Shown here in pieces: positions 6,224 through 60,070 of a stretch of 64,000 bases of DNA. The DNA lies in NCBI GenBank assembly GCA_020184695.1, contig JAANOX010000014.1, positions 302,149 to 366,148 on the forward strand, written 5' to 3'. Within the stretch, counting starts at the first letter, position 1, and the number at the start of each line of letters is the position of its first letter. A model generated the notes under the pieces. The model did not search any database. It was not told the origin of the DNA and saw only the letters and a list, made by a program, of their open reading frames with translations. The stretch comes from Histomonas meleagridis 2922-C6/04-290x. Taxonomy: Eukaryota; Protista; Parabasalia. Made by a program: the position numbers and the translations under genes.

Positions 6224-9200
6224 TTAATATCTCTTCCACATTTCGTCTTGTTGTCTGTAATCCTCTTTATATTGATTCGGGTCCTCATCTTGCTGTTGCA
6301 TGTTTGCGATTTGTGCCATTGTTAATCTTTTTTCGTTTGCCGGCTTTTTAATTTCTATTTCGTCATCTTTAAATATTTCTCCAGCGTTACCTTGCACGTC
6401 TTCATTTTCGTCGTTGATGATTGCTTGCGCGACTTTTCGTTTTTGTTTTTGTGTTTCCAAAATTCTGCTTTCGATTGTTTCATCTGTAATTAAGTTGAAC
6501 ACTGTGACTTGTTTCGTTTGACCCATTCGATGAGCTCTCGCAATCGCTTGGTCATCGTCAGTGAAGTTCCAACTGTTTTCCATAAATATTACGATGTTAG
6601 CGACTTGTAAATTTAATCCTAATCCACCGACAGATGTGGTCAACAATAATATGTCGGGGCCATCTTCTTTGTTAAAGTTATCGATGATTTTATGTCGATC
6701 TCGTTCAGCTACATTACCATCCAATATTGTATAAGTTAAGCCTTCGATTTTCGATAATAAAATTTCCACTGTAATTTCAATTGTTTGAGTTGACTGTGTA
6801 AATATTAAGACACGATTACGCATTGACGTTTTACCACCACCAAAACCTAATCGTGATAATAATAATGATTTCAATTCTTTAAGTTTCGCCGAATATTCTA
6901 ATAAATGTGGTATCGACGGATCGACTAAACATGGATGAATACATAACTTTCGTTCTTTCTTCATCTTGACAAATGTATGTTCATTAATTTCGTCATCTGA
7001 ATTGATCGCATGTTTAGAACGAATACTTTGTAATACTTCTCGTTGCTTATCAGTCATCTTAAAAACTTCATCATAGATAACCTTGGGAGGTAACTCTGAC
7101 ATGACATTGATTTTTAAACGTCTCATTATAAACGGTAGCACTTGATTGTGTAAACTTGTCAATATCTGTTGGCCCAATTCAGTCTCGAGTTCAGTCGCTT
7201 CTGGCTTAAACATCTTCTTGATTGGGCGTTGATATTTGGTTTGGAACTCTTCTTTAGTACCTAAGAAGCCAGGCATTAAGAAATCCATTAAAGTCCAAAG
7301 TTCAGTAACATTATTTTGGATGGGAGTTCCTGTTAATATTAAACGATGTTGTGCAATAATTTGTACTACAGCCTCGGAAACTTTTGTCGATTTGTTCTTA
7401 ATAATATGACCTTCATCTAATACACAATATACAAATTTCCTTTGTCTTATTATTGGTATTAAATTCCGAACGTTCTGATATGAAATAATTAACAAACCAT
7501 TCATCATATGAAAGTTTTGTACGTTTAATTCCGTTTTCGAGTAAATTGGATTCACATTAATTTGTGGATAAAATTGTTGCGTTTCAGAAGCCCAATGATG
7601 TATAATTGAAGACGGACAAACAATGATACTAAATGCGGAGTTAGAATTCGTTTCAAAATTTTCTTTTGTATGTGCATTCGATATAACAGATAAACATTGA
7701 AATGTCTTACCTAAGCCCATATCATCAGCTAAGATACCATTTAAACCATATTGGTATAAGAACCATAACCAATTAATACCATTGACTTGATAATCTTTAA
7801 TTTTCCCATTTGGTATTGATTCGAAGTTTGGTAATGGGTTTAATATACATTTTGGAGCTTGACTTATATCGAACAATGGCTTTAAATATTTCATTGATTT
7901 GATTTTAGCGTTATGTAAATTATCGGGGAATATACTTAAGTCGCCATCATCCAAAGGCAAAAGTTTAACAATTTGTGCTAATGAATGTGAAGCCATTCTT
8001 CGGATATAATCTTCTTGATTAGCGATATTATACATACAAGTTTCCACAAAGAACGACGCCCATTTTAATAATTTATCTGATTTGACGTCGAAATTTGTTA
8101 ATAATAAATCAATGAATTCGATACAACTTGCAGATAATTTATGTGTATTATCTTGGATAAATAAAACAAATAATGTTAAAAATTGGGAATAATTCTCCAT
8201 TTGACAATAACGATTTGCAATGAATGCTGAAAATGAACCAAAATATCGTTCAGCATTTTGCATTGTATCGATTAACATATATAAATAATTATTTGGTATT
8301 TTCATTTTGGATTCGACACAATAATAAAATTGTAATAATGAATGAATTGATAATAAGTTTTGTGGTGGTTTATATACTGCATTAATTGATATTAATTTCG
8401 ATGTTATTATAATCGGATCACTTTTTATAGTTTTAATTAGTTCTGAATAATGATCAGAATCTTTAAAATTATCATATATCGATTGTTCATTCATTACATT
8501 ACGAAGTATTAATTGTGATATTTCAGAATCACTTTCAGATTCTTTAAGATATCGTCCAACATATTTACAGACAAATAATCGAATCGATGAAAAAAGTTTC
8601 GACGTTGATATTAAAAATTTGTCTTCGATAATTTCCGATGTTTTTAATGTGAATAAACTTAATAATAATCGTAATGGGTCTTTGCTAAAGATATTTGGCT
8701 TAATTCCATCGAAGATTGGAGTAGATGTATCATTATGTAAACATAAAATAATGATAAAAGCAACACTCCAAATCGACTTACAATTCTTAAAGACTGGATG
8801 TTCATCATTAACTTCTAAATAATGTGCTAACTCAATTAATAATGGCATAATGTTTGGTAACTTTTGGATATCTTCGGCTAAATAATCACAAACTTTGACT
8901 GCAAATGTACTATCAAAATAAATACCGCGATATCGCATTAATTCTTGATATTTGTTAATGACATGGATTGATAATGAATATATTTCTTTGTCACGTTCAT
9001 TTAATGAACAATTAAATAATTGTAAAGTATATTGATGAAAATCAAAATCTTCATATACTTCATGATCCTTTAAAGAAAATAATGACTCTAACAATAAATA
9101 AGATGCTCTTCGTGTTGCAATTGATGGATATTGACAATGCGTGACGATAGAAAAAGTGTCTTCGTCAATAAATTCTGAAAATTGACACTTTTCAATGATG

Positions 9201-10159
9201 ACTTTTAAGGCTTTAAGACATGGATAATTATATGGATCGATGTCTTCCGAATTGATAAGAAGTTCCCAGATGCCAGAAGTGATTTGATCAATTTGTGAAA
9301 AATATGGTAAGATTTTCATTACAGCTTTAAGCGCTGCTGCAGTGACTTCATCTGCATCACCAGCTTCACTAAAGGCTTCAAAAAGACGTGGCTGAAGCCA
9401 ATTTGGATCAATACAATTTTTATCAACTTTAAGCATATGATGAACAACAATCCAAAAAGATTGACGAAGTCCCCAATCATCCGTAGATTTACGAAGTCGA
9501 AATTGTTCTAAAATATCTAACCCAGATTGAACATTTTGCATTAAACATCGAGCTAATAAATGTGAAGCAGGTTCTACAACAGGAAATACAACCATGTCAC
9601 CACTAAAGTCTTTAAACCGGTCAAGTGCTAAAAGAGTAAATACTCGAACTGATAAATCTTCTAGATAATCTGAAGGAACATGTGATTGAATAGATCGAAG
9701 TAAACATTGTACCGCACCATGTCTGAATTCCCAACGTTGAGAAGTTAGTTTTGGAATCATATCTTCTGAAATTTGACACAATTCGGATAACCTTGATTCT
9801 TCATCAACATGAAAAGAGGGTATTGAGGTTGATGTACCACGTAATAGTGGTTCACATTTTTGTATGATATCTTCTAGATTAAATGATTTTAGTTTCATAA
9901 AAGGTCGATTTACATTCCATGATTGAAAATTTGGACGAGATAATGGAATTAAATTTTCAAGAGCTATTCCTGCAGCTCTTCTACACTCAAAATCATTGTC
10001 TAAAAATAGTGGATACAATTTAAATAAAATGTATGATAAGTCATATGAAAATTCTTTTTGAAGGTGACCGATTTGTATGGCAGCAACAGTTCGAATTGCT
10101 CTTGTCTTGCCTTTGTGTATAAGATCAATGAGACGTTCGAATTTGTTTTTCTTCGCCAT
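6224..10159 (-). CDS. MOT1: Mot1/BTAF1 TBP-associated SNF2 ATPase
   Basis: N-terminal HEAT region (IRTVAAIQIG, WEFRHGA, LDRFKDFSGDMVVFPV). SNF2 motifs GILADDMGLGKT, LDEGHIIKN, LTGTPIQNN, LLTTSVGGLGLNL, QAIARAHRMGQ. Confidence 0.93.
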   Translation of the reverse strand: MAKKNKFERLIDLIHKGKTRAIRTVAAIQIGHLQKEFSYDLSYILFKLYPLFLDNDFECRRAAGIALENLIPLSRPNFQSWNVNRPFMKLKSFNLEDIIQKCEPLLRGTSTSIPSFHVDEESRLSELCQISEDMIPKLTSQRWEFRHGAVQCLLRSIQSHVPSDYLEDLSVRVFTLLALDRFKDFSGDMVVFPVVEPASHLLARCLMQNVQSGLDILEQFRLRKSTDDWGLRQSFWIVVHHMLKVDKNCIDPNWLQPRLFEAFSEAGDADEVTAAALKAVMKILPYFSQIDQITSGIWELLINSEDIDPYNYPCLKALKVIIEKCQFSEFIDEDTFSIVTHCQYPSIATRRASYLLLESLFSLKDHEVYEDFDFHQYTLQLFNCSLNERDKEIYSLSIHVINKYQELMRYRGIYFDSTFAVKVCDYLAEDIQKLPNIMPLLIELAHYLEVNDEHPVFKNCKSIWSVAFIIILCLHNDTSTPIFDGIKPNIFSKDPLRLLLSLFTLKTSEIIEDKFLISTSKLFSSIRLFVCKYVGRYLKESESDSEISQLILRNVMNEQSIYDNFKDSDHYSELIKTIKSDPIIITSKLISINAVYKPPQNLLSIHSLLQFYYCVESKMKIPNNYLYMLIDTMQNAERYFGSFSAFIANRYCQMENYSQFLTLFVLFIQDNTHKLSASCIEFIDLLLTNFDVKSDKLLKWASFFVETCMYNIANQEDYIRRMASHSLAQIVKLLPLDDGDLSIFPDNLHNAKIKSMKYLKPLFDISQAPKCILNPLPNFESIPNGKIKDYQVNGINWLWFLYQYGLNGILADDMGLGKTFQCLSVISNAHTKENFETNSNSAFSIIVCPSSIIHHWASETQQFYPQINVNPIYSKTELNVQNFHMMNGLLIISYQNVRNLIPIIRQRKFVYCVLDEGHIIKNKSTKVSEAVVQIIAQHRLILTGTPIQNNVTELWTLMDFLMPGFLGTKEEFQTKYQRPIKKMFKPEATELETELGQQILTSLHNQVLPFIMRRLKINVMSELPPKVIYDEVFKMTDKQREVLQSIRSKHAINSDDEINEHTFVKMKKERKLCIHPCLVDPSIPHLLEYSAKLKELKSLLLSRLGFGGGKTSMRNRVLIFTQSTQTIEITVEILLSKIEGLTYTILDGNVAERDRHKIIDNFNKEDGPDILLLTTSVGGLGLNLQVANIVIFMENSWNFTDDDQAIARAHRMGQTKQVTVFNLITDETIESRILETQKQKRKVAQAIINDENEDVQGNAGEIFKDDEIEIKKPANEKRLTMAQIANMQQQDEDPNQYKEDYRQQDEMWKRY

Positions 10160-10729: not shown

Positions 10730-11380
10730 TTAAATAAGAAAAACACAGAGATATCTCTGATAAAAGTATAGAAAAATATTATATGAAAAAAATAAATAAA
10801 AATTAATTTTATTTACTAAATAAATATTAAAAATGGTATTAAAATTAAAAATTATTATAATAAATTTTAAATAAAACAAATAAATATCTTTAGCATTAAT
10901 ATCAATTCCTTTTTGTTCAAGAAGTAATTTAACTATTTCTGTATGACCTTTATAAAATGCCCAAATAAGTGCTGCATAAAATAAATTAAATAATTTCCAA
11001 ATATAATTTTGAAATAGAAAATTATTAAAATAAATATAAAATAAAAAAATAAATATCTTTAGTATTAATATTAATTCCTTCTTGTTCAAGAAGTAATTTA
11101 ACTATTTCAAAATATTCATTTTCTAATGCACGTAAAAGTGCGGTATCAAATAATTTAAATAATTTCCAAATATTATTTTGAAATATCAAATTATTAAAAT
11201 AAATATCAAATAAAACAAATAAATATCTTTAGCATTAATATCAATTCCTTCTTGTTCAAGAAGTAATTTAACTATTTCTATATAACAATTTCTAGATGCA
11301 TACATAAGTGCTGTCCATAATATTTTAAATAATTTCCAAATATTATTTTGAAATATAAAATTATTAAAATAAATTTGAAA
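10730..11380 (-). repeat. Inverted orphan fragment of a spacer-interrupted ankyrin array (3 modules)
   Basis: Minus-strand modules TALMYAS.., TALLRAL.. and AALIWAF..EIVKLLLEQ.GI.IN.KD start at 11314, 11144 and 10975 (periods 170 and 169; the latter has a T-run one base short). Same spacer family as 17713-18571. Confidence 0.85.
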
Positions 11381-12666
11381 TAATTGATGTTAATTCAAAA
11401 AATACAATAAACACAGGAGATAAAAAATTGAATAATCTATCAACCAGCTTGAAATTCTTAATCGAGCTTGAGAAAACTATATTCAGTTTAACCGAAAAAA
11501 ACATACAGCCATCCATTAAAAAAGTATTGGAATTATTCGATTCAAATTATCCCTATACATTTAATAGTATTATAAGTAACATGGTTTATAATGCATTTTC
11601 ATCACTAAAACATGAATTTGATATTTACTTAAATTTTTTAAAAACACTTCAAACGAAAGAAGAAGAAAATAATCAAAGTGTCGATAAACTAATTTCAATT
11701 TTTATCAAACGTATAACTGAAATCAACACACAAGAATCATATTATTTAATGGAGAAACTAATTGAACAAAATTTGATTGATAAAAATATTACCAAAAATA
11801 TTAAATCGAGATATTTTTCTCATTATCAGGCAAAAGAAGAAAACCAAATCCACATAGCATTTGGAAATGATCCAATAGAAAAATACTTTTTGGATCATTA
11901 TGAAGAACTTTCAAAGAATGATTGGGAGCTTCATAAGAAATATGTTAAAGAAGGACATAATCCAAATGACATTGCGAAAATAATTCGAAATGATGAAATA
12001 GAAAAACTTCAAGAAATATCATCACAAACAAATTTTGATTTTAATCAATTTATTATGCCATCACTTTATGAAAGATGTTCATTTATTAATCAAAAGAATG
12101 TTTCATTAATTGATTATGCAGCATTTTTTGGATCAATTAAATGTTTTAAATATTTACTTATGAATAATGCAAATGTAAATAATACAGGTAAATATGCAGT
12201 TGCAGGTGGAAATGAAGAAATCATTCATTTATGTGAACAAAATCATTCAACATTTGAAGATGCATATGAAGCTTCAATAGAATTTCATCGAAATAATATC
12301 TTTAAATATATTTATGATAACAAATTAGAAGAAATACAACCAAAGTCAATACTTCAAACGCCTGGAGATGAAACTAATCATTTGGTAAGTTTTTGTATCA
12401 AAAAAGATAATTATGATATTTCAGCGTTTTTGGAAGAAATAGGAATTAATGTAAATGCTGATAATTTAAATGAATCAGCAAGAAATGGAAATTTATTTCT
12501 CTTGAAATATTTCCTTCAAAATAATCAAATTCCAAAAAATATTTTGCCATTTGCTTCAGAATCAGGAAATAGTGAACTTGTGAAATATGTTTTAGAACAA
12601 AAAGAAATTGATGTTAATGCAAAAAGTATTCATTTGAATAATTTAGAATATGTTTTAATATTTTGA
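11368..12666 (+). CDS. DUF3447/ankyrin-repeat protein, N-terminal part; no in-frame ATG at the 5' end
   Basis: IAKIIRNDEIEKLQ, SLIDYAAFFGSIKCFKYL and YAVAGGNEEIIHLCEQ are DUF3447-type motifs. The frame ends in the first spacer after IDVNAKS. Frame opens at 11368; first ATG is at 11581. Confidence 0.85.
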   Translation, partial: NKFEIIDVNSKNTINTGDKKLNNLSTSLKFLIELEKTIFSLTEKNIQPSIKKVLELFDSNYPYTFNSIISNMVYNAFSSLKHEFDIYLNFLKTLQTKEEENNQSVDKLISIFIKRITEINTQESYYLMEKLIEQNLIDKNITKNIKSRYFSHYQAKEENQIHIAFGNDPIEKYFLDHYEELSKNDWELHKKYVKEGHNPNDIAKIIRNDEIEKLQEISSQTNFDFNQFIMPSLYERCSFINQKNVSLIDYAAFFGSIKCFKYLLMNNANVNNTGKYAVAGGNEEIIHLCEQNHSTFEDAYEASIEFHRNNIFKYIYDNKLEEIQPKSILQTPGDETNHLVSFCIKKDNYDISAFLEEIGINVNADNLNESARNGNLFLLKYFLQNNQIPKNILPFASESGNSELVKYVLEQKEIDVNAKSIHLNNLEYVLIF

Positions 12667-15404
12667 AACATGTTTTAATAATTTATAATATGTTTTAATA
12701 ATTTGTAATATGTTTTAATAATTTGTAATATGTTTTAATAATTTGGAATATGTTTGAATAATTTGAAATATGTTTTAATAATTTGAAACAGCACTTCATA
12801 TAGCAGTTAGAAATAATAATATAGAAATAGTAAAATTACTTTTAGATAAAGGAATTGATGTTAATGCAAAAACTATTCATTTGAATAATTTGTAATATGT
12901 TTTAATAATTTGTAATATGTTTTCATAATTTGGAATATGTTTTAATAATATTTTATATGATTCAATAATTTGGAATATGTTTTAATAATTTAGAATATGT
13001 TTTAATAATTTGTAATATGTTTTAATAATTTGTAATATGTTTTAATAATTTGAAATATGTTTTAATAATTTGAAACAGCACTTCATATAGCAGTTAGAAA
13101 TAATAATATAGAAATAGTAAAATTACTTTTAGATAAAGAAGGAATTGATGTTAATGCAAAAAATATTCATTTGAATAATTTGGAATATGTTTTAATAATT
13201 TAAAATATGTTTTCATAATTTGGAATATGTTTTCATAATTTGTAATATGTTTTAATAATTTGGAATATGTTTGAATAATTTGAAATATGTTTTAATAATT
13301 TGAAACAGCATATCATATAGCAGTTAGAAATAATAATATAGAAATAGTAAAATTACTTTTAGATAAAGAAGGAATTGATGTTAATGCAAAAAATATTCAT
13401 TTGAATAATTTGGAATATGTTTTAATAATTTAAAATATGTTTTCATAATTTGGAATATGTTTTCATAATTTGGAATATGTTTTAATAATTTGGAATATGT
13501 TTTAATAATTTGAAATATGTTTTAATAATTTGAAACAGCACTTCATATAGCAGTTAGAAATAATAATATAGAAATAGTAAAATTACTTTTAGATAAAGAA
13601 GGAATTGATGTTAATGCAAAAAATATTCATTTGAATAATTTGGAATATGTTTTAATAATTTAAAATATGTTTTCATAATTTGGAATATGTTTTCATAATT
13701 TGGAATATGTTTTAATAATTTGAAATATGTTTTAATAATTTGAAATATGTTTTAATAATTTGAAACAGCACTTCATATAGCAGTTAGAAATAATAATATA
13801 GAAATAGTAAAATTACTTTTAGATAAAGAAGGAATTGATGTTAATGCAAAAAATATTCATTTGAATAATTTGGAATATGTTTTAATAATTTAAAATATGT
13901 TTTCATAATTTGGAATATGTTTTAATAATATTTTATATGATTCAATAATTTGGAATATGTTTGAATAATTTGAAATATGTTTTAATAATTTGAAACAGCA
14001 TATCATATAGCAGTTAGAAATAATAATATAGAAATAGTAAAATTACTTTTAGATAAAGAAGGAATTGATGTTAATGCAAAAAATATTCATTTTAATAATT
14101 TGGAATATGTTTTAATAATTTGAAATATGTTTTCATAATTTGGAATATGTTTTCATAATTTGGAATATGTTTTCATAATTTGGAATATGTTTTAATAATA
14201 TTTTATATGATTCAATAATTTGGAATATGTTTTAATAATTTGTAATATGTTTTAATAATTTGGAATATGTTTTAATAATTTGAAATATGTTTTAATAATT
14301 TGAAACAGCACTTCATATAGCAGTTAGAAATAATAATATAGAAATAGTAAAATTACTTTTAGATAAAGAAGGAATTGATGTTAATGCAAAAAATATTCAT
14401 TTGAATAATTTGGAATATGTTTTAATAATTTAAAATATGTTTTCATAATTTGGAATATGTTTGAATAATTTGAAATATGTTTTCATAATTTGGAATATGT
14501 TTTAATAATATTTTATATGATTCAATAATTTGGAATATGTTTTAATAATTTGTAATATGTTTTAATAATTTGTAATATGTTTTAATAATTTGGAATATGT
14601 TTGAATAATTTGAAATATGTTTTAATAATTTGAAACAGCACTTCATATAGCAGTTAGAAATAATAATATAGAAATAGTAAAATTACTTTTAGATAAAGAA
14701 GGAATTGATGTTAATGCAAAAACTATTCATTTGAATAATTTGGAATATGTTTTAATAATTTGTAATATGTTTTAATAATTTGGAATATGTTTTAATAATT
14801 TAAAATATGTTTTCATAATTTGGAATATGTTTTAATAATATTTTATATGATTCAATAATTTGGAATATGTTTTAATAATTTGTAATATGTTTTAATAATT
14901 TGTAATATGTTTTAATAATTTGGAATATGTTTGAATAATTTGAAATATGTTTTAATAATTTGAAACAGCACTTCATATAGCAGTTAGAAATAATAATATA
15001 GAAATAGTAAAATTACTTTTAGATAAAGAAGGAATTGATGTTAATGCAAAAAATATTCATTTGAATAATTTGGAATATGTTTTAATAATTTGTAATATGT
15101 TTTAATAATTTGGAATATGTTTTAATAATTTGGAATATGTTTTAATAATTTGTAATATGTTTTAATAATTTGTAATATGTTTTAATAATTTGTAATATGT
15201 TTTAATAATTTAGAATATGTTTTAATAATTTGAAACAGCACTTCATATAGCAGTTAGAAATAATAATATAGAAATAGTAAAATTACTTTTAGATAAAGAA
15301 GGAATTGATGTTAATGCAAAAACTATTCATTTGAATAATTTGGAATATGTTTTAATAATTTGTAATATGTTTTCATAATTTGGAATATGTTTTAATAATA
15401 TTTA
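12628..15404 (+). repeat. Array of 10 near-identical ankyrin modules (TALHIAVRNNNIEIVKLLLDKEGIDVNAKN) separated by 20-bp minisatellite spacers
   Basis: Thr codons at 12788, 13075, 13305, 13535, 13765, 13995, 14305, 14635, 14965 and 15235. Spacer unit ATATGTTTTAATAATTTG(G/T/A)A. Confidence 0.95.
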
Positions 15405-15704
15405 ACTGCAATTCAAATTGCACAAGAAAAAGGTTACACAGAAATAGTAAATTTACTTCGTGAAAAAAGTATAAACGAAAATTTTCAATCAAAATCTTCT
15501 TTTGTAAGCATCAAATCTTCATTTTCAATACGAAATGGAAATGAAGCGTATATTGCTAATAATCAAAATCAACTTGAAGATCAAATTTTCGCAGTAAATA
15601 CTAAAAAGAAAATTACAAAAAGTGTTGATGTAAACACTCAAACATATGAAAACAAACATATTCGTAAAGCAAAATATAAATACATAAAAACAATAATATT
15701 ATAA
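15405..15704 (+). CDS. Putative terminal segment of the ankyrin gene (divergent last repeat plus unique tail)
   Basis: TAIQIAQEKGYTEIVNLLREKSINENFQ...IKTIIL* is open for 99 codons, exactly 170 bp after the previous module. It has no ATG. Confidence 0.6.
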   Translation, partial: TAIQIAQEKGYTEIVNLLREKSINENFQSKSSFVSIKSSFSIRNGNEAYIANNQNQLEDQIFAVNTKKKITKSVDVNTQTYENKHIRKAKYKYIKTIIL

Positions 15705-16521
15705 AGTGAATTATAAGAAAAACTTCAACAAATAATTATAGCAACAATAGTAAGATTTGATAAATTTTCACACAATTTAAACGATAATTCTCCAATCATT
15801 TGAGAATACCGCCACTGATAATAAACGGTCGTTTCAAAAACTTAAAATTCATTTTTCTTTTTTATTTCAAAAAAATATTTAAATTTTAGTGAATATTTTA
15901 AATTTATCTATATGATGATAGTAATATATTTTAATGGTACTGAATAATTTCCAAGAAATCATTCTGAGTATCACATATTGGAGATCCAATTTCACATACA
16001 AAAAATAAAATTTAAAACAGATTTTTAAGTTCACACTCGCTTAAAATCAACAAAGAATAAAATAATTTTTGATCAAGAGGAATCTATTGGCTGTTTTTGA
16101 AATATGGAATCATTGTGATTACTTTTGATATAAGCAAAATTTAAAAAATCTGTCTTGACAAAATTTTTAAAATTAGATAAATTTTGGATACAAGTATATA
16201 ATTTTGAAAAATATATCATATTCATTTCATGAATTAATTTCCAAAATTTGAGAGCTTCCATCTTTAATTGAATAGTTTCTAACTTGGATTTTAACTGGAT
16301 TTTGTTTAAAAGGAACAGTATATGCAGAATTAAATTATTTTGCAGTGAAACTGATTGAATTGGGTTTTATTGATTCACAAAAATTTAAATTTCAGAATAA
16401 TCCATATTTTATACATTACATGTCAATAAAAGAAATTAATTTTTTGAGTAAATCAATAAATTTTACGAATCATTTTCATAGTAATTATGTGTTTAGGATT
16501 GACACAAAAGTGTCATTTCAT

Positions 16522-17751
16522 ATGGAATTTCAAGCAAAAAGCCAAATTCATGGGAACGAATGGGAAACATTACAATATATTAAGAATTTAATATTCAATT
16601 TAAACAAAGAAAATATCATTCAATCTTCAAAATTAATTATAAGTAAATTTGATGATATTTATCCATTATCTTTTAATTTAATTATTGTTAGGATTACATA
16701 TGCAATTGTTATCATGCGAATGAAAGATATTGATTTATATTTGAATTTTCTTAAAGAAATAAAAAAACTAGAAATGAACATTCATCAAGAAATTGATATT
16801 TTTGATATATATGGACATTTTCTTGTTAGTAAGAGTACACAAGAATCATATTATCTTCTTTCCAAAATGATTGAAGATAATTTACTTGATAAAAAAATCA
16901 TTAAAAATATAAAACACTCGATTGCTTCTCAAGGATATTTTGTGCAATACATGCCAAATGAAACAATTAAAGAATTAGGGGATGATAAATTTACTGAATA
17001 TATTCAAAAAAATTATGAAGAACTTTCAAATAATGATTGGGAATTACATAAGAAATTAATTGAAGAAGGAGTTAATCCAAATGAAATTGCGAAAATAATT
17101 CGAAATGATGAAATCGAAAAACTTCAAGTAATATCATCACAACAAAATTTTGATTTTAATCAAACAATTGAACCATCACTTTATGAAAGATGTTCATTTA
17201 TTAATCATTCTAATGTTACATTAATTGATTATGCAGCATTTTTTGGATCAATTGAATGTTTTAAATATTTATTTATGAACAATGCAAATGTAGAAAACAC
17301 AGGTAAATATGCAGTTGCAGGTGGAAATCAAGAAATTATTCATTTATGCGAACAGAATCATTCATCATTTGAAGGTGCATATGAAACAGCAATTATGTTT
17401 CATCGAAATGATATTTTTAAATATATTTATGAAAATGAGATTATCGGAATTGATAATTTAGAAGAATTAGGGAAAAAATGTATTACATATCATAATTATG
17501 AACTATTATCATATTTACAAGAAAATGATATGAAAATTAATGACAATATTATTAATGAAGCCGCACAAACAGGAAATTTATTACTTACCAAATATTTTCT
17601 TAAATTCTATCAAATCCCAAAAAATATTTTAGTTTTTTCAACAATATCTGGAAATATTGAACTTGTTAAAACCATTTTAGAAAAAGAAGGAATTGATGTT
17701 AATACTAAAAATATTTATTTGTTTTATTCGAAATTTGAATTAATAATTTAA
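16522..17751 (+). CDS. DUF3447/ankyrin-repeat protein, paralog of 11368-12666, N-terminal part
   Basis: Same DUF3447 motifs. ATG 16522 follows the Inr-like TCATTTCAT, so it is preferred over GTG 16345. The frame stops inside the first spacer. Confidence 0.85.
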   Translation: MEFQAKSQIHGNEWETLQYIKNLIFNLNKENIIQSSKLIISKFDDIYPLSFNLIIVRITYAIVIMRMKDIDLYLNFLKEIKKLEMNIHQEIDIFDIYGHFLVSKSTQESYYLLSKMIEDNLLDKKIIKNIKHSIASQGYFVQYMPNETIKELGDDKFTEYIQKNYEELSNNDWELHKKLIEEGVNPNEIAKIIRNDEIEKLQVISSQQNFDFNQTIEPSLYERCSFINHSNVTLIDYAAFFGSIECFKYLFMNNANVENTGKYAVAGGNQEIIHLCEQNHSSFEGAYETAIMFHRNDIFKYIYENEIIGIDNLEELGKKCITYHNYELLSYLQENDMKINDNIINEAAQTGNLLLTKYFLKFYQIPKNILVFSTISGNIELVKTILEKEGIDVNTKNIYLFYSKFELII

Positions 17752-18571
17752 TATTTCAAAATAATAATTGGAAATTATTTAAATTATTTAATACAGCACT
17801 TCTATTAGCATCTGGAAATGGTTATGCAGAAATAGTTAAATTACTTCTTGAACAAGAAGGAATTGATATTAATGCTAAAAATTTTTATTTGTTTTATTTA
17901 ATATTTATTTGAATAATTTTATATTTCAAAGTAATATTTGGAAATTATTTGAAATATTTTGGTCTGCACTTATTTGGGCATATCTAAAAGGATACATTGA
18001 AATCGTTAAATTACTTCTTGAACAAGAAGGAATTGATGTTAATACTCAAAATATTTTTTTGTTTCATTTAATGTTTATTTTAATAATTTTATATTTCAAA
18101 GTAATATTTGGAAATTATTTAAATTATTTCAAACAGCACTTATGATTGCATCTGGAATTGGTCATACTGAAATCGTTAAATTCCTTCTTGAACATAAAGG
18201 AATTGATGTTAATAGTAAAAATATTTATTTGTTTTATTTAGAATTTATTTTAATAATTTTTTATTTCAAAATGTTGTTTGGAAATTATTTAAATTTTTTA
18301 GAACAGCACTTATTAATGCATCTGAAAATGGTTATACAGAAATAGTTAAATTACTTCTTGAACATGAAGGAATTGATGTTAATGCGAAAGATATTTATTT
18401 ATATTATTTAGAATTTTTTTTAACAATTTCATATTTCAAAATAATATTTGGAAATTATTCAAATTATTTAGAACAGCACTTGTGTATGCATCTGAAAATG
18501 GTCATACAAAAATAGTTAAATTAATTACTCAAAAAGAAAGGAATAAAAGTAATACAAAAAATATTTATTAG
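17713..18571 (+). repeat. Five diverged ankyrin modules, each preceded by an 80-nt AT-rich spacer (period exactly 170 bp)
   Basis: Module starts at 17623 (inside the ORF), 17793, 17963, 18133, 18303 and 18473. TAL..AS.NG..EIVKLLLE.EGIDVN.KN intact in all but the last, which has a divergent C-terminal half. Confidence 0.95.
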
Positions 18572-19771
18572 TTTTACTTGAAATATATTTTTACTATTTC
18601 TAATTTCAAAATAATATTTAATTCCCAATCTCTCATTTCTTCTAAATATATATCTTTCTAATCAATTTCTGATTGTGAAAAAGAATTTAAAAGAAAAATA
18701 ACTTTGTTTGATATAGTTTTAATAATTACGTGGACTGATATTTGTTGATATAAAATGAAAACGCATAATCCAAATACACTGTTAGTTATTCTAAAAGAAT
18801 TAAGTGGAAAGCTGTGTATTGCTGTGGAGCAAAGTGAAGTTGTTTTGGGCATTACTTGGATATTTTTATAGATTGATGTCGTTCCCAATACATAGCCCAG
18901 TAATTACAACTACAAACATCGATATTAATATTTCAGTCGATTATATCCCTGATGAAAGTAGTGAATTCTTTGAAATTTTGAGTTTTACACATTATAATTA
19001 TGTTTTTGTAATTTACAAAATATTTTGTAATTTGTAACTGCTTTTTTGATATAAAACATATAATCTCTTAATTGGTATATTAATTAGGGAATTTTCTTAC
19101 TTCAAAACATTGAATATGTTATTCAACTTGTGAATACTTTTTTGACTTTCAAAAAGAACACTTCCAGTATAAGACACTAAATTTACAAAGGAAAATCATA
19201 AACTTATTAGATGAATATTAAATAAAACATTTGCAATTTCAATCTAATTGACTCCATTTTCAATTAATTTTTTATGAAGTTCCCAATCATTCGATTTCTG
19301 TAGATTGAGAATTATTAATTTTTTTGTTTATTTGATAATGTCACTCGCAAAAAGAAAAAATAAAAAGTGACTTTTAAAAGTTTTCATAATTTCTTTGATT
19401 TGCCAAAAAAAAATAGTTGTTTACATATGTTTTTTGATTTTTTCTACATATAATACAGAAAATATGGAATTGATATGTTTCATAATATCTTTAGATCAAT
19501 ATAACTTTGTTAGGACATTTTAAAAAAAGGATAATTTACTTGTTTTTTAAATTTGATAGATCTTTATTTTGTTTTATGATTTTTTTCATGAAATGTTTGT
19601 TCATCTTGATCGGCTTTTTTTATTCAGAACTTTATATCATTCCTTCAAAGCTAGCTTTTTGTGTTAGCCTATGAAAACCGATCAAATTTGATTATGTTTT
19701 ATTCATTTTGATAATTTTAAATTGATAGCGATTGATAATTTTATTCTTAACGTTCGAAATATAAAAAGTCA

Positions 19772-25725: not shown

Positions 25726-26947
25726 TCATATAACCGCTTTGCTTATCTTTTTGATAGGGCGGCGACCGTTTCCACGTCGTTTATCTGCTCTCGCAACGAT
25801 AGAATGTTCGTGGCGCATTTTGTGTTGCATAAATGATGCTGCAAGTGGCTGTGACTTTTGTTGACGTTTAGATAAAATCATATGTGTAATACTACTACTA
25901 TTAGAATGTCCATTATTACTATCTAAATTACTATTATTACTCGTAGTATCGGAATATGTCGTAATAAGAGTTTGGCGATAATTTTCTGATATTTGAATAA
26001 CTTCTTTTTCACGTGAAAGTAAATAATATGATACAGTTTCATTATTAATAAATTCATTACCATGTAAAAATGAGATTTTATTCGGATCTAATGAATATTT
26101 AGGAAATTTTTGGATAATTTCTTGATCAATTTCAAATGAATTACCATTAATAAATGGATAATGAACTTGCGTAAACCATGGATGCTGAACAATCTTTTCA
26201 AGTGTAATACGTTCAATAGGTGATTTCTTAAATATTTGTGTTAAAAGATCACAAAGTTCATATGAAAAATATTCTGGATATTCTGGTTCTGTATTGATGA
26301 TTGAAAATACTAAAAGACCTGCATTATTACCACGAAATGGTAATGTCCCTGAACACATTAAATATAATAAAACACCTAAACTCCAGATATCACTCATTGT
26401 AGAAAATGGTTCTCCATTAAGAACTTCTGGTGAAAGATATCCAATATGACTATATGAATCATGTAAAATAGATTTATCATTTTGAATGTTGACTTAAACT
26501 AAACCCTGTGAATCGAATATGAAAATAATGATCAAAAAGAACATTCTTAGAACAAAAGTCACAATGAACTAAACCTTGGTCTCGTAAATATTTAACTGAT
26601 GAAACTAACTGTGAAAAATATAATAATGACGTTTCTTCGGTTAATTTTTCATTATTAATGATAAAATTCGTTAACTCCCCGTTCTCTAAAAACTCATGAA
26701 CTAAGTAAAAATTTTGTTCATCTTGAAAATAATCAAATAATCGATTAATAAAAGGATGGTGAAGATTACGTGTAATATTAACTTCATTCTCGATTTTTTC
26801 TCGAAGTTGATGAACTTCGTCTAAATTTTTGGGATAAATTTTGACAATTACGATGATCCCTGTAGGTTTATGTGTTGCTTTCATAATTCGATAATTCTCG
26901 CCTTGTGTTAAACACCCTAAAAATTCATAATTACAAAGTTTTTCCAT
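25726..26947 (-). pseudogene. CAMK/SNF1-like kinase homolog with one frameshift (copy 2)
   Basis: ORFs 26477-26998 and 25726-26397 join into ~406 aa if one extra base near 26480 is removed (CATTCAAAATGAT versus CATTTAAATGAT in copy 1). Confidence 0.75.
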
Positions 26948-27848
26948 TGACTTTTTTATATTTCGAACGTTAAGAATAAAATTATCAATCGCTCTCAATT
27001 TAGAAACCGTAATGTTTGTTGTAAAATTTAATGTTCTTCGGCTGAAAGTTGTATGGAATAAATAGCTTTAGAAAATTATTCATGCTAAACAAAAACAACA
27101 TTCACTTATAATTTCTAATGAGTAATTAATATACATCGAGCAGAAAACATGTAAATACATTTCATTAAAAAAACATTAATGTTTTCTAAAAATATTTTTA
27201 CTAACTATCTATTAGTTATCATTATTCAGGCTAATTCGAACAATTTGGAAATAAGCTTGAAATTGTTATGATATTTTTCTTCTCGAATACTGTAAGTTAA
27301 ATTGTTAAAAAAATTTGAGCAGTAAGTGTTCGAATATATGTACATTTTATAATCAGTATTTTTTACTTAAATTTCAAATAATCTTATTCAATTTTGAATA
27401 AAAAAACAAATATATGAATTGATTAATATTCACTAAATTAAATATTATACACAAATAAGAATTTCAAAAAAATCAATGCAAAAATCTGGAAAATATATTT
27501 TTCATTTCGAAATGATACCATGTGATATTTGTGCCCCAAGTAAAATATTCAAAAAGTAATGTTAACCACTGGACAACAAAAAGTGCCTAATCGTTAGTCA
27601 TTGTTCTGAATACTGCTGTCAATTTGACAATACCAGTAAAATAAAAATGAAAATATCTTAACATATTATCAATATAATTTGTTTATACTGTTAACTAATA
27701 TATACAATTTGTTTTTTATCATTTTTAATGAACTATTAATAAGATATTTCTTTAATTTTAAAATATATTCTTGTTTCTTAAAAAATGATATTTGAGAGCA
27801 TTCGTTGCAGTCGTGCTATCAAAATTCAATACATCGATTTCCAAAAAA

Positions 27849-28757
27849 ATGTTTGCGTTTTTACTTGCATTAGGTGCATCAGTAACAACGTACACCGTCA
27901 AATCCGGCGACACACTTTCAGGAATCGCTGTTAAATTCGGTGTTACTGTTTCACAACTTTGCTCATGGAACGGAATTTCAAATCCCAACCTTATCTATGT
28001 TGGCCAAGTTCTTAAAGTTTCTGCTAGCAGCGGTGGTGGCAGCAGCGGCTCATACACAACATACACAGTTAAGTCTGGTGATACCCTTTCAGCTATTGCT
28101 GCAAGATACGGCACAACAGTCTCAGCAATCTGCTCCCTCAATGGCATTTCAAATGCTAACCTTATCTATGTTGGTCAAGTTCTTAAGATCCCAGGCGGCA
28201 GCAGCCCACAACCAACAGCAGCTCCACAACCAACATCAGGATCATCAGTTACAGCTTCCCAAATGCAAAGATTCGGATGGGTTGACACATCATCAACAGT
28301 TATCAACGACTTAAACAGCTGCCTTAGCAGATTCGGAATCACAAACCGTCAATCACGTCTTCACTTCCTTTCACAATGCGCTCACGAATCAGGTCTTGGT
28401 AAGTGGACTAAGGAACTCGCAAGTGGTTCAGCATACGAATATCGTTCCGACTTAGGAAACATTTATGCTGGTGATGGACCAAAGTATAAGGGTGGTGGTT
28501 ACATCCAATTAACAGGCCGTTACAACTACCAACAATTAGCCAACTACCTCGGTGATCAAAACGTCATGCAAGGTGTCGACTATGTTGCCACCCACTATCC
28601 ATGGACATCCGCTGGCTTCTGGTGGTACAGGAACGGAATGAACACACTTTGCGCAAACGGCGCTACAGTTGAGCAAGTTACAAAGAGAGTTAACGGCGGC
28701 TACAATGGTCTTGAATCACGTAGAGCCTACTACAACAAGGCATGTGGAATCTTCTAA
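27849..28757 (+). CDS. Secreted 2xLysM + glycoside hydrolase family 19 (chitinase/lysozyme-like) protein
   Basis: Signal-like [11 protein letters not shown]; two [12 protein letters not shown]...YVGQVLK LysM repeats; GH19 motifs [25 protein letters not shown] and [13 protein letters not shown]. Confidence 0.93.
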
Positions 28758-29205
28758 ACTGGCTCCTTTACTTTAATTTTGGAAATCGAATTTGTGCAGA
28801 TTAATTGAAATGTGTTTAATTAAGATTGCAACCAAAATGTATCTGTTTATTGTGTTGAATGTGTGCGAAATTGATATAAATACTTATGTTTTCGTGAGAT
28901 AAATCCCATTTCGCTTCTTTCTTGATCAAGAAATGAATGTGGTGCAGTTTCAATTTGTATGAGGTGTAAATCGGCGGTTATTTATTGGCTGCACAAAATT
29001 GAGAGGCAACGGTTTATACGTCAATCTGACGAAATGGTTTTTTTTAAAACATAAATTTCTCGACATGAAGAAGAAAACCAGTAAATTTAGTCGAAATGTT
29101 TTTTAAATAACAAAAATTATGTGTAATATTATAATAAGTTTTGATGATTTTGATTATTCTAAGATATAAACAAATTTTTATTTTTGAAAGCATTAAGTCA
29201 AAAAA

Positions 29206-30132
29206 ATGTTTGCGTTTTTGCTTGCATTAGGTGCATCAGCATCAACGTACACCGTAAAGTCCGGCGATACCCTTTCCGGAATTGCCAAGAAGTTCGGTGT
29301 TACCGTTTCCCAATTATGTTCATGGAACGGAATTAAAGATGCTAACAAAATCTATGTTGGCCAAGTTCTTAAAGTTTCAGCCAGCAGTGGTGGTGGCAGC
29401 AGCGGCTCATACACAACATACACAGTTAAGTCTGGTGATACCCTTTCAGCTATTGCTGCAAGATACGGCACAACAGTCTCAGCAATCTGCTCCCTCAATG
29501 GAATTAAGAATGCCAACAAAATCTACGTAGGTCAAAAACTTAAGATTCCAAGCGGCGGATCAAAGCCTCAACCAACAGCAGCTCCAAAACCAACATCAGG
29601 TGGTGGTGGCAGCGGATCAACTGTTACAGCATCTCAAATGAAGAAGTTCGGATGGGTCGACACATCATCAACAGTTATCAACGACTTAAACAGCTGCCTC
29701 AAGAAATTCGGAATCACAAACCGTCAATCACGTCTTCACTTCCTTTCACAATGCGCTCACGAATCAGGCCTTGGTAAATGGACTAAGGAACTCGCTAGCG
29801 GAAAGGCTTATGAAGGACGTAAGGACTTAGGTAACACTCAACCAGGTGATGGTCCCAAGTATAAGGGTGGTGGTTACATCCAATTAACAGGCCGTTACAA
29901 CTATCAAGCATTAGCTAACTATCTTGGTGACCAAAAAGTTATGCAAGGTGTCGATTATGTTGCTAAGCACTATCCATGGACATCTGCCGGTTTCTGGTGG
30001 TACAGAAATGGAATGAACACACTTTGCGCAAACGGCGCTTCAGTTGAACAAGTTACAAAGAGAGTTAATGGTGGTTACAACGGCCTTGAATCACGTAGGA
30101 AATACTACAACAAGGCATGTGGAATCTTCTAA
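29206..30132 (+). CDS. Secreted 2xLysM + GH19 protein, tandem paralog (Lys-rich)
   Basis: Same architecture and catalytic HES motif as 27849-28757. Confidence 0.93.
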
Positions 30133-30357
30133 AGCAGTTCTTGCTTTTGATTTCTTTTGAGAAAGCAAACCAAAATGATCTCAAATTAGCTCAATAAACT
30201 AGTGAAGATCAAAAACTTTTCCAATTTCATGCCGCTATATCAGAGACGACGAAAACTTTTTCTGTGATAATCCACTTTTCAAATGTAAAGAAAACAACAT
30301 TTTGAGTTATTTTTTCAGAGGAAACCGTGGTCACTTCACATTATAATTGAACGTGTT

Positions 30358-30381
30358 AAAACGATAAATATTTATCGTTTT
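30358..30381. promoter_or_regulatory. Perfect 24-bp palindrome AAAACGATAAATATTTATCGTTTT upstream of the malic enzyme gene
   Basis: Exact self-complementarity. It ends 7 bp before the Inr-like TCACTT (30388) and 19 bp before the ATG. Each arm matches ANAACGATA. Confidence 0.65.
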
Positions 30382-30399
30382 TTAAGTTCACTTTTCTCG

Positions 30400-31581
30400 A
30401 TGACTAATTACGCTCAAGAATCACTTAAGCTTCATCAAAAGCTCAGAGGTAAGCTCGAAATCGTTTGCCGTGCCCCAGTTACAAACAAAGAAGAATTATC
30501 CCTTGCTTATACACCTGGTGTTGCCCAACCATGCCTTGAAATCCAAAAGAACGTCGATCTTTCTTACGAATTAACAAGAAGGTGGAATACTGTCGCTGTT
30601 GTTACTGATGGTACTGCTGTTCTTGGCTTAGGTGATATCGGACCAGAAGCTGGCATGCCAGTTATGGAAGGAAAATGCGTCCTTTTCAAGTCCTTTGGTG
30701 ATGTTGATGCTATCCCACTTTGCATCCGTTCCAAGAATGTTGAAGATATTTGCCGTACTGTTGAATTATTAGCTGGTTCCTTCGGTGGTATCAACCTTGA
30801 AGATATCAGCGCTCCACGTTGCTTCGAAATCGAACGCCGCCTTAAGCAAACATGTGACATTCCAATCTATCATGATGATCAACATGGTACAGCTGTTGTT
30901 ACACTTGCTGCTCTTACAAATGCCCTTCGTATCGTTGGAAAGAAGATCGAGGATATCAAAGTCGTTACATCTGGAGCTGGTGCTGCAGGTATTGCTATCA
31001 TCAAACTTTTAATTGCTCGTGGTCTTAATCCAAAGAATGTTATCATGACCGATCGTATGGGAGCTATCTATGAAGGTCGTGAAGGTCTTAACCCAGAGAA
31101 GGAAGAAATCGCCAAGATCACAAACTCTGAAAAACTTTCTGGTTCACTTGCCGATGTTCTTAAGGGTGCTGATGTCTTCATTGGTGTTTCTGCTCCAAAG
31201 ACAGTCACTAAGGAAATGGTTAAGTCAATGGCACCAAATGCAGTTCTCTTCCCAATGGCTAACCCAACACCAGAAATCATGCCAAACGAAGCACTTGAAG
31301 CAGGTGCTGCTGTTGTTGGTACAGGACGTTCTGATTTCCCCAACCAAATCAACAACGTTCTTGCATTCCCAGCAATCTTCCGTGGTGCACTTGATGTTCG
31401 TGCTAAGGATATCAATGATGAAATGAACATTGCTGCTGCTAATGCAATTGCTGACCTTGTTTCCCCAGAAGAACTCAACAAGGATTACATCTTACCTAAG
31501 CCATTCGACCCACGTGTTAAAGATGCCGTCAGTAAAGCAGTCGCTGAAGCAGCACGTAAGTCTGGAGTTGCAAGAATTTAA
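30400..31581 (+). CDS. Bacterial-type NAD(P)-dependent malic enzyme (short ~390-aa form)
   Basis: LSLAYTPGVA, VTDGTAVLGLGDIG, PVMEGK, INLEDISAPRCF, HDDQHGTA, GAGAAG, TGRSDFPNQINNVLAFP. Confidence 0.96.
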   Translation: MTNYAQESLKLHQKLRGKLEIVCRAPVTNKEELSLAYTPGVAQPCLEIQKNVDLSYELTRRWNTVAVVTDGTAVLGLGDIGPEAGMPVMEGKCVLFKSFGDVDAIPLCIRSKNVEDICRTVELLAGSFGGINLEDISAPRCFEIERRLKQTCDIPIYHDDQHGTAVVTLAALTNALRIVGKKIEDIKVVTSGAGAAGIAIIKLLIARGLNPKNVIMTDRMGAIYEGREGLNPEKEEIAKITNSEKLSGSLADVLKGADVFIGVSAPKTVTKEMVKSMAPNAVLFPMANPTPEIMPNEALEAGAAVVGTGRSDFPNQINNVLAFPAIFRGALDVRAKDINDEMNIAAANAIADLVSPEELNKDYILPKPFDPRVKDAVSKAVAEAARKSGVARI

Positions 31582-46383: not shown

Positions 46384-46842
46384 ATGTCATTGCCCCAAGA
46401 AGATCACCACATAGAAAATGAAGAAATCAAACGAAAGGCATACAAGAGGCTTTCAAAAGAAGAGTTGGCTGAAATCTTGCGATTGAAATCAGAAGGAATA
46501 CCTGTTTCAATATTGGCAGAAAGATTTTCTATTACTGAAAGACAAATCCATCGAATATTTAAGAACTCCCAATACACCTATGATTTAATGTCAGTAGAAC
46601 CTAAGTCTAAAAAGAAAGTTCAATCTATTATCCAAGAACAACATTCTGCTTACATTTACGAGGAACTATTAATTGACCCTCACGTATCATTAGACTTTCT
46701 CTCTGAAGGTTTGTTATACTTTTTTGGAGTGAAAGTTTCACATTCAACAATTTGGCGTCATATTCGTGGTGGTGGTCTAGAAGCTCACGGATTCCCTGGA
46801 TTCACAAAAGTATCTTCTCATGAAGTAGAAGATCAATGCTGA
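46384..46842 (+). CDS. Small double helix-turn-helix protein resembling the Tc1/IS630 transposase DNA-binding region, without a DDE domain
   Basis: YKRLSKEELAEILRL..EG.PVS.LAERF.ITERQIHRI (HTH1) and LSEGLLYFFGVKVSHSTIWRHIR (HTH2). Confidence 0.6.
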   Translation: MSLPQEDHHIENEEIKRKAYKRLSKEELAEILRLKSEGIPVSILAERFSITERQIHRIFKNSQYTYDLMSVEPKSKKKVQSIIQEQHSAYIYEELLIDPHVSLDFLSEGLLYFFGVKVSHSTIWRHIRGGGLEAHGFPGFTKVSSHEVEDQC

Positions 46843-58629: not shown

Positions 58630-60070
58630 TGTATAACAAGAGAGAATCAAAAATGACTCAAGAGAAAAAACAAGAAAGTAAACAAGAATAAACGAGAACG
58701 AGTAAGAACAAGGAGAATTAAAAATAAAAAACAAAAATAAATAATGAAGAAGAATAAACAAAGACAATAAAAATAACAGACAAGAATAAACAATCGAAAA
58801 TAATATATGAGAATAAGTGAGCAAAAAGAATAAATGAAAATAAACAAGAACGAACAAGAACAAAAAAAGAAAATAAATGAAGAAAATGATAAGAATAAAA
58901 GATAAAAAACAGTGAATATAAAAAAAAGAAGAAATACGAAAAAGCAAAGACAAGCAAGAAAAAACAATGAATGAAATCGAAAAAAGAGAAAAAAAAGTTC
59001 AAACAAAAATAAACAGGAATAAATGAAAACAAACAACGAATGATCAATAATCATCAGAATCGATTAAAATAAACATTCAAGAATGAATGACAACGAACAA
59101 TACATATAAACAAATCATAAAAATAAACGTCAACAAACAATGAATGAGAATGAATAAACAAGAATAATTGAGAATAAACAATAATAATCATAGAATAAAC
59201 AAGAATAATCGAGAATATATATTAAATTCATGAGTATAAACAAAAAATACACAATAAATATATGATAGCAAACAAAAATAAATGAGAATTAATGAGAACA
59301 AAGAATAATAATCAATGAATAAACAAGTTAAAACATGGATAATTACATACGAATAAAATTCATCAAGAATTATCAAGTACTATCAAGTACAAATATTGAA
59401 TAAATGATAAAATTTAATGAACAAATGAGAATAAATATAAATAATGAAGAATAATCAATAAATGAACAAGAATAATTGAGAATAAACAAGAATAATCAAT
59501 GAATAAAGAATAATATCAAATGCATGAATAGAAGTAAACAAGAATAAATGAGAATAAACGATAATAATCAAGATTAATTAGAAATAAACAATTGTTTATA
59601 ATCATTAATGAGGACGAATGATGAATAATCAAGAACAAAAAATCAATAAACATTAATAAACAATGAACAAATGAGAATAAAAAATAAATAAGTTTGAATA
59701 AATAAGATCAAACAAAAACATATGAGAATAAATTAGAATAAGCAGAAATATACAAGAATAATCTAGAGCAAACAATGAATGTAAAAAAATAAACTTTAAC
59801 AAACAATGAACAAAGAAGAATAAACAATAATGAGTGATAATGAATATAAGCAAACAAATGAATAACTGAATGAGAATAATCAATGAAAAATCAAGAACAA
59901 ACAATGAATAAACAAGAACAAACAATTAATAAACAAGAACAAACAAGAATTATTCAAGAAAATAAACAAGAATAAGCAAGAATAAATATAAATGAATCAA
60001 AAAAACAAACAAGAATAAATGAGAACAAACAATGAGCAAACAAAGATTGAACAATGAATGAACAAGAATT
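58630..60070 (+). repeat. ~1.4-kb strand-asymmetric A-rich degenerate satellite (GAATAAACAA / AATGAGAATAAA variants)
   Basis: Recurrent short A-rich motifs; C and G occur almost only within AAC and GAA/GAG. Confidence 0.85.

Follow-up and report, generated by a model that had tools for sequence, protein, structure and literature searches.

Ankyrin-repeat genes of Histomonas meleagridis interrupted between repeats by frame-breaking spacers: candidates for non-canonical excision from RNA

How can an ankyrin protein be read from DNA in which the frame is broken after every repeat? The question is raised by a 64,000-nucleotide stretch of the genome of the parabasalid Histomonas meleagridis 2922-C6/04-290x (contig JAANOX010000014.1, positions 302,149 to 366,148 of the forward strand; hereafter the window), where an open reading frame (ORF) of 468 codons (16345-17751), encoding a DUF3447/ankyrin protein, runs into an array of ankyrin modules separated by short spacers. 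Tandem Repeats Finder (TRF) places this array at 17680-18619, with a period of 170, 5.5 copies, 80% matches and a score of 1135. Read in register, it consists of six stop-free modules of 30 codons (starts at 17623, 17793, 17963, 18133, 18303 and 18473), so that six 90-nt modules span 17623-18562 at an exact 170-bp period, and every module is followed by a spacer of exactly 80 nt. As 80 equals 2 modulo 3, each of these spacers breaks the frame, and the majority also contain stop codons. The first module (module 0, 17623-17712) is the end of the upstream ORF, while the sixth (18473-18562) is a degenerate cap module running into a TAG at 18569-18571. A 39-nt module motif occurs six times in the window and a 29-nt spacer motif eight times, each against an expectation of 0.00. 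The initial annotation of the window had described this period, the frame-breaking or stop-containing spacers and the peptides TALLLAS, SALIWAY, TALMIAS, TALINAS and TALVYAS, all of which proved correct.

The window is AT-rich (22-42% GC) and nearly free of introns, with long unbroken ORFs; the published H. meleagridis genome comprises 43 Mb at 28.7% GC, with few predicted introns (PMC8529796). The counterpart of the window in assembly GCA_020186115.1 is contig WSYJ01000052.1, with window base 1 near contig position 491562; the malic enzyme and the S28 peptidase encoded in the window match this contig exactly.

Further copies of the design were located by a position-specific module scan. Locus L003 (H. 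meleagridis, WSYJ01000186.1) contains around 45 diverged modules in two arrays, placed behind two genes of the same family. Twenty-nine consecutive L003 modules have diverged from their consensus by 25%, as much as their spacers have, and still all their 870 codons are free of stops, while the two alternative frames contain 78 and 137. Simulated neutral drift to that divergence predicts about 45 stops, and none of 2000 runs produced fewer than 24. In these modules codon position 2 is half as divergent (0.23) as positions 1 and 3 (0.42 and 0.45), and the spacers contain stops in all three frames. A decaying pseudogene or satellite array is thus rejected for them, given the absence of stops and given that all 29 modules have kept their 90 nt. 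The exception is found behind the L003 gene that is disrupted by a mariner-like transposon: the module right behind the transposon has a TAA where a lysine codon is expected, and the first six modules carry three stops, the decay being confined to them. The transposon itself (L003 11210-12480) is a mariner/Tc1-like element; it has inverted ends, contains a degenerate ORF of 249 codons for a transposase and is located within a family gene annotated as 'caskin' (P0014).

In the young arrays of the window, the pooled ratio of nonsynonymous to synonymous differences (pN/pS) is close to 1, although very unevenly distributed. Variation is concentrated in the codon preceding T-A-L and in codons 1-12, with mean pairwise differences of 0.28-0.43, whereas the values for codons 13-30 and for the spacer are 0.09 and 0.13 (permutation p = 0.0002). 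These variable codons are the binding face of the ankyrin repeat. The modules are clearly under protein-level selection, and the conserved frame, the lack of stops in which had been noted in the initial annotation, is strong evidence that they are translated. Since the modules behave as coding sequence, the spacers must be removed somehow.

The borders of the coding pieces were defined by a map of stop codons on both sides of 42 distinct spacers. The first codon past the module is never a stop and encodes isoleucine in 28 copies, valine in nine and phenylalanine in three; the next two codons are stops in three and four copies. Upstream of the module, codon -1 is polar, variable and free of stops, and codon -2 encodes phenylalanine in 31 copies and is a stop in one, while 12 copies have a stop at codon -3 and 10 at codon -4. 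This gives a coding piece of 2 + 30 + 1 = 33 codons (99 nt), which is the canonical length of an ankyrin repeat, and around 71 nt would have to be removed from the 80-nt spacer, not the 68 nt per unit that had been proposed initially. Compared singly with the Pfam Ank profile (PF00023, threshold 21.1 bits), eight of nine 33-codon pieces reach 28.2-43.1 bits, matching positions 3-32 of 33. The cap piece of the window gene described above (gene B) scores 18.8 bits, below this cut-off, and its match covers the first two thirds of the repeat. Two junctions lack a spacer altogether, one of 12 nt in locus L001 and one of 9 nt in L003.

Each of the five complete arrays is closed by a cap module, in which the two helices are kept and the EQEGIDVN loop gives way to a polar tail and a stop. 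These are located at window 18467-18571 and 15399-15704, at L003 15734-15895 and 20738-20893, and at 1979-2056 of locus L002. The terminal piece at window 15399-15704 belongs to a second array (array A), located behind a paralogue of gene B (gene A). It has no possible start codon, is directly preceded by two stops and lies 3 kb past the first stop of gene A. By piece count, the intact L003 gene would start with the piece at 16222-17649, continue through 19 internal ones and finish with a cap, which amounts to 20 interruptions. All these genes belong to a DUF3447-ankyrin family, in which DUF3447 is followed by ankyrin repeats, with homologues in H. meleagridis, Tritrichomonas foetus and metagenomes; the T. 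foetus homologue (35% identity) has the same N-terminal part and then a continuous ankyrin array. The cap modules, the start-less 101-codon frame, the order of the pieces and the T. foetus homologue together identify the arrays as 3' parts of genes and not as debris.

The 80-nt spacer is built of four 20-mers, each containing a 17-nt core (consensus RTTTATTT...ATTT) followed by three variable bases; in array A there are 7-12 of them per spacer. The sense strand consists of 52% T, 36% A, 8.5% G and 3.5% C. Even diverged copies hardly vary at positions 35-37 (TTT), 57-59 (TGG) and 75-77 (TTT), and a conserved TTGGAA core is located around 20 nt ahead of the downstream piece. The first spacer base is A in 12 copies, G in six and T in three, and the triplet that it forms with the two following T's can just as well be read as the conserved isoleucine or valine codon. 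Spacer lengths of 60, 63, 80, 83 and 140-240 nt are observed, in all three classes modulo 3.

Ordinary splicing does not account for the junctions in general. At 6 of 46 junctions a GT..AG pair can be chosen that keeps the frame and leaves no stop, compared with a mean of 8.2 in shuffled spacers, and a trichomonad ACTAAC-type motif was found neither in the spacers nor elsewhere in the window; the lack of both signals had been noted in the initial annotation and is borne out here. U12-type AT-AC introns were also rejected, as both the 5' ATATCC and the TCCTTAAC branch site are absent from the spacers, which contain only 3.5% C. Spliceosomal introns with very degenerate signals, in one version starting at the first spacer base (a G in locus L006), could be considered instead. 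The L006 spacers start with GT in five of six cases and with GC in the sixth, one L003 spacer starts with the trichomonad consensus GTATGT, and both the U-richness and the conserved motif, around 20 nt ahead of the next piece, are reminiscent of a branch region. Against this, the first base is A in most H. meleagridis copies, and the triplet it begins is at the same time the conserved isoleucine or valine codon. Neither AG nor any other fixed pair is present at an allowed 3' boundary, the ACTAAC motif is missing and in-frame GT..AG solutions are no commoner than in shuffled spacers, which makes degenerate spliceosomal introns unlikely.

A different possibility is that the spacers stay in the mRNA and that the ribosome crosses them, either through a programmed frameshift or through bypassing (hopping) of the kind found in T4 gene 60. 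It is true that 33 of 46 distinct gaps are 2 modulo 3, so that one type of shift would serve most junctions, that stops are scarcer in the frame that enters the next module (13 in about 312 codons) than in the others (21 and 40), and that the 63-nt spacer of the L002 relative reads through in frame. However, 17 of the 37 frame-breaking gaps, which fall into all classes modulo 3 when taken with the others, offer no stop-free path with a single shift, seven of the nine in-frame gaps contain stops, and a quarter of the spacers have stops at codons -3 and -4. Matched take-off and landing triplets do not exceed chance: no pair of positions is clearly above the between-spacer expectation, the largest excess, around 4 of 21, falling on positions that do not vary in the repeat. 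An apparent covariation between the first variable triplet of the spacer and the last (5 of 21 cases against 1.8 expected, mostly in related window copies) was not accepted as a signal. With gaps of up to 240 nt and up to 20 successive events per mRNA, crossing by the ribosome is barely credible. Start codons within the spacers were rejected because stops follow them.

If the spacers were eliminated from the DNA of certain cells or stages, through programmed excision or recombination between the 20-nt subrepeats, the assembled sequence would represent the unexcised form. The spacers are indeed integral multiples of the 20-mer, the copy number of which clearly changes (60, 80, 140-240 nt), and short AT-rich interruptions of coding sequence recall the eliminated sequences of ciliates. 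But deletion of whole 20-mers from an 80-nt spacer loses the conserved F-x and I/V codons, and excision from TA to TA, calculated from the spacer consensus, leaves 11 nt and a frame that stays broken. The same unexcised form is present in independent short-read metagenome contigs. We know of no division into germline and soma in parabasalids, and consider a DNA-level event very improbable. An Rfam search of the 10.5-19 kb region gave no match. The evidence for a joining route is negative for every known mechanism.

With the modules coding and the known routes negative, non-canonical excision at the RNA level is taken as the best explanation. Only excision tolerates spacers of 60-240 nt in all classes modulo 3, a range of lengths that it predicts and that translation across the spacers does not. 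On sequence grounds we infer that these are real multi-piece DUF3447-ankyrin genes, the spacers of which would be removed from the transcript by a non-canonical route, and give this reading about an even chance. The first piece would encode the N-terminal domain and the first ankyrin module, and the middle would be a row of 99-nt pieces with one 33-residue repeat each (F-x, TAL...IDVNAK[DN], I/V). The last piece would contribute the cap repeat, the polar tail and the stop. Cutting the U-rich intervening sequences (around 71 nt of each 80-nt spacer) from the transcript would allow a single long ankyrin solenoid to be translated. The unit of piece plus spacer would multiply by tandem duplication, with subsequent diversification of the binding face, and the machinery may be either a very tolerant spliceosome or a dedicated cut-and-ligate route.

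Several observations weigh against removal of the spacers from RNA. The candidate ends are not GT-AG, AT-AC or any other fixed dinucleotide, the 3' end being AAATTA before TTT, and one copy has a stop at codon -2, within the proposed coding piece. Four junctions have frame-breaking gaps of 23-26 nt only, three diverged copies among them retaining a length of 26; to our knowledge, such gaps are too short for any known intron. No RNA structure pairing the ends was detected, RNAalifold giving no pairs for 21 spacers with their flanks and single-sequence folding a mean z of -0.19. Three homologue searches (with the whole first ORF, with its last 117 residues and with a natural two-module stretch) returned no joined or transcript-derived product, and the public annotation contains no gene models over the module arrays of the window or L003. 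The minus-strand array of the window has intact modules, yet no upstream gene. Trichomonad introns are strictly canonical and few, with at most one or two per gene (PMC12316389).

Some of these points also speak for the main rival explanation, in which the arrays are not expressed as one protein: the last repeat and its 3' flank would have been amplified and kept as donors for gene conversion (silent cassettes), or would be young relics. Missing gene models and splice signals would then be expected, as would an inverted array without a gene. Array A is a very recent, satellite-like amplification with higher-order units that are 95% identical. A 5' part that is hypervariable, next to a 3' half and a spacer that are homogenised, forms the kind of mosaic that results from segmental gene conversion, and stops are present in the first modules behind the transposon-broken L003 gene. 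The arrays do share with silent cassettes their start-less open segments and the focusing of variation in defined regions. On the other side, the open state of 29 out of 29 old, diverged modules, for which about 45 stops are expected, exceeds what second-order selection on donors would achieve. Each complete array owns an ordered cap module, tail and stop, and a donor would have no use for the start-less 101-codon frame at 15399-15704. Homology ahead of the variable part of a module is confined to the spacer, so any recipient would also have to lie behind a spacer that needs removal. Neither the window and L003 nor the protein searches yielded a spacer-free expression site that could receive cassettes. 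When 1.84 billion representative proteins were searched with a module profile, generic giant ankyrin proteins dominated the matches, and no joined form specific to the family emerged. We regard silent cassettes, which the initial annotation had offered as an alternative, or relics as less favoured and rather doubtful.

Excision from RNA may be specified further, although only tentatively. Histomonads may possess a spliceosome-independent or radically relaxed excision system, which would recognise U-rich elements made up of 20-nt subrepeats, in which the TTGGAA core keeps a constant distance to the next coding piece, and act up to 20 times per transcript. As the element would be copied along with each repeat, such a system would allow ankyrin repeats to be amplified and diversified unit by unit.

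Among known systems, the animal ankyrin genes provide a parallel: they contain one exon per repeat (99-nt exons), flanked by ordinary GT-AG introns. As in these genes and in tandem exon duplication generally, the Histomonas piece of 33 codons equals one Pfam repeat, the unit is amplified in tandem and a cap repeat is located at the end. Unlike in animals, the intervening sequences have no canonical ends, measure 71 or 20n-9 nt and occur in a lineage that is nearly intron-free. Introns of trichomonads are of type A (59-196 nt) or type B (around 23-26 nt), with the consensus GTAYGT...ACTAACACACAG, and three Trichomonas ankyrin-repeat genes are among the genes that bear them (PMC12316389). The Histomonas spacers are likewise short, belong to a parabasalid and interrupt coding sequence, but the defining motifs are absent from them; and where Trichomonas has about 60 introns genome-wide, with one or two per gene, a single Histomonas gene would have 20.

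The non-canonical introns of Amoebophrya and the nonconventional introns of Euglena, which are proven by RNA sequencing, lack fixed terminal dinucleotides, are repeated in sequence and are missed by standard annotation (PMC7789003, PMC11170887). The Histomonas spacers also lack fixed terminal dinucleotides, are repeated and are unannotated. While the Amoebophrya and Euglena introns typically have inverted repeats or terminal pairing and short direct repeats at their borders, the Histomonas spacers show no pairing of the ends and a border microhomology of 1 nt, and their copies arise through tandem duplication instead of transposition. The Borrelia vls, Anaplasma msp2 and trypanosome VSG systems (the last with its 70-bp repeats) resemble the Histomonas arrays in having start-less open segments split by conserved repeats and focused variation; in contrast to them, no separate spacer-free expression site was found, and each Histomonas array is attached to its own gene with cap, tail and stop. 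T4 gene 60 and the mitochondrial byps of Magnusiomyces share the presence of short non-coding inserts in an otherwise intact reading frame, but the Histomonas gaps have no matched take-off and landing codons, reach 240 nt, number up to 20 per gene and are nuclear. The Histomonas design would combine non-canonical intervening sequences with tandem one-repeat exons and could prove to represent a new mechanism.

The design recurs beyond the window, at other loci and contigs; the wide occurrence supposed initially is so far borne out for one DUF3447-ankyrin family of Histomonas and close relatives only. Five metagenome contigs encode family members with the same arrangement of modules and 80-nt spacers. 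These members show 44-59% identity, which equals the divergence among the H. meleagridis paralogues. One spacer from a metagenome shares 84% of its bases with the window consensus, although the adjoining proteins are 54% identical. No such arrays were present at 80 loci of distant DUF3447 relatives from parabasalids (21-36% identity, JGI metagenomes). A distant family member, P0017 (36% identity), has a continuous ankyrin array followed by a spacer-like tail and a stop, with a 106-residue ankyrin ORF 135 nt downstream; given this layout, the interruption of arrays at the borders of repeats may predate the 170-bp arrays. In the literature on Histomonas, Dientamoeba and other parabasalids, no description of the design was found.

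Parabasalids are textbook examples of intron-poor eukaryotes with rigid splice signals. If the spacers leave the RNA, these organisms would hold genes with around 20 intervening sequences that disobey such signals, and a new or very relaxed excision mechanism would be indicated. The public gene set of this poultry pathogen lacks a whole family with a seemingly diversifying surface, because gene finders need GT-AG and halt at the first stop codon. If, on the other hand, the arrays are not expressed, they would represent an unusual long-term preservation of open frames without translation.

The features of the arrays are collected in Table 1. The initial annotation had recognised the design in two further regions of the window, in both cases correctly. 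For the region given as 10730-11380, the array in fact occupies 10848-11383 of the minus strand, the module scan placing its modules at 11314-10886. It adjoins an inverted module fragment beside the 5' end of gene A and, since it has neither an upstream gene nor a cap module, is considered an orphan inverted copy. For the region given as 12628-15404 (array A), the exact spacing does not apply: the spacers vary in multiples of 20 nt, and a terminal piece follows. TRF detects periods of 20, 230 and 330 in array A, which resembles a 20-bp satellite.

Table 1. Coding pieces and intervening sequences of the ankyrin-module arrays in the window.
Feature	Position	Strand	Description
Gene B, first coding piece	16345..17715	+	N-terminal domain, DUF3447/ankyrin, module 0 and one extra codon (ATT); as an ORF continues to TAA 17749-17751; first in-frame ATG near 16420; Pfam DUF3447 at 6.7e-10, Ank_2 at 1.1e-8; family relatives 44-58% identical
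Intervening sequence 1 (putative)	17716..17786	+	71 nt within 80-nt spacer 17713-17792; four 20-mers, very AT-rich, TTGGAA core
Coding piece 2	17787..17885	+	33 codons: F-N, TALLLAS...INAKN, one extra codon; stop-free; Pfam Ank 33.8 bits
Intervening sequence 2 (putative)	17886..17956	+	71 nt
Coding piece 3	17957..18055	+	F-W, SALIWAY...; Pfam Ank 28.2 bits
Intervening sequence 3 (putative)	18056..18126	+	71 nt
Coding piece 4	18127..18225	+	F-Q, TALMIAS...; Pfam Ank 36.4 bits
Intervening sequence 4 (putative)	18226..18296	+	71 nt
Coding piece 5	18297..18395	+	F-R, TALINAS...; Pfam Ank 33.4 bits
Intervening sequence 5 (putative)	18396..18466	+	71 nt
Gene B, terminal cap piece	18467..18571	+	F-R, TALVYASENGHTKIVK...; polar tail instead of EQEGIDVN loop; TAG 18569-18571
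Gene A, first coding piece	11428..12666	+	Paralogue of gene B, 55% identity; module 0 at 12538-12627
Array A	12628..15398	+	10 near-identical modules (TALHIAVRNNNIEIVKLLLDKEGIDVNAKN); the first, 12788-12874, one codon short; spacers of 160, 200, 140 (x4), 220, 240, 240, 180 and 80 nt, all built of 20-mers
Array A, terminal piece	15399..15704	+	101 open codons: cap module and polar tail of ~75 residues, then TAA
Orphan inverted array	10886..11320	-	Three intact modules, gaps of 80 and 79 nt

The 170-bp unit (window 17623-18642 and the L003 arrays) is near the nucleosome repeat and the monomer size of many centromeric satellites, and the conserved GGAAT core of the spacer is reminiscent of satellite motifs; both resemblances may be coincidental.

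Elsewhere in the window, a protein kinase gene on the minus strand (25726-26998) is split into two ORFs, which match positions 4-147 and 178-263 of the Pkinase profile. A 79-nt intron was suspected at 26.4 kb, but the break is actually a one-base frame shift in the region of the activation loop, near 26470-26490, and reflects either a pseudogene or a residual error of the long-read assembly. A SNF2 helicase is encoded on the minus strand (6224-10159) by one unbroken ORF of 1311 codons; the public model over the same span has 1060 residues and seems to contain an unsupported intron. An ORF at 46384-46842 encodes helix-turn-helix domains of the Tc3/resolvase type and is probably a transposase remnant. 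Inside a kinase/armadillo gene of 1122 codons, a 144-bp tandem repeat (40109-40531; 2.9 copies, 95% identical) is in frame, with 48 codons per unit, and a long A-rich, purine-skewed tract at 58680-60068 contains degenerate repeats of 10, 20 and 41 nt (of the GAATAAACAA type). Finally, a GC-rich island (27792-31581; 40-42% GC, against around 27% in its surroundings) contains two LysM-domain genes and the malic enzyme gene, its composition and the LysM domains suggesting bacterial ancestry or very high expression.

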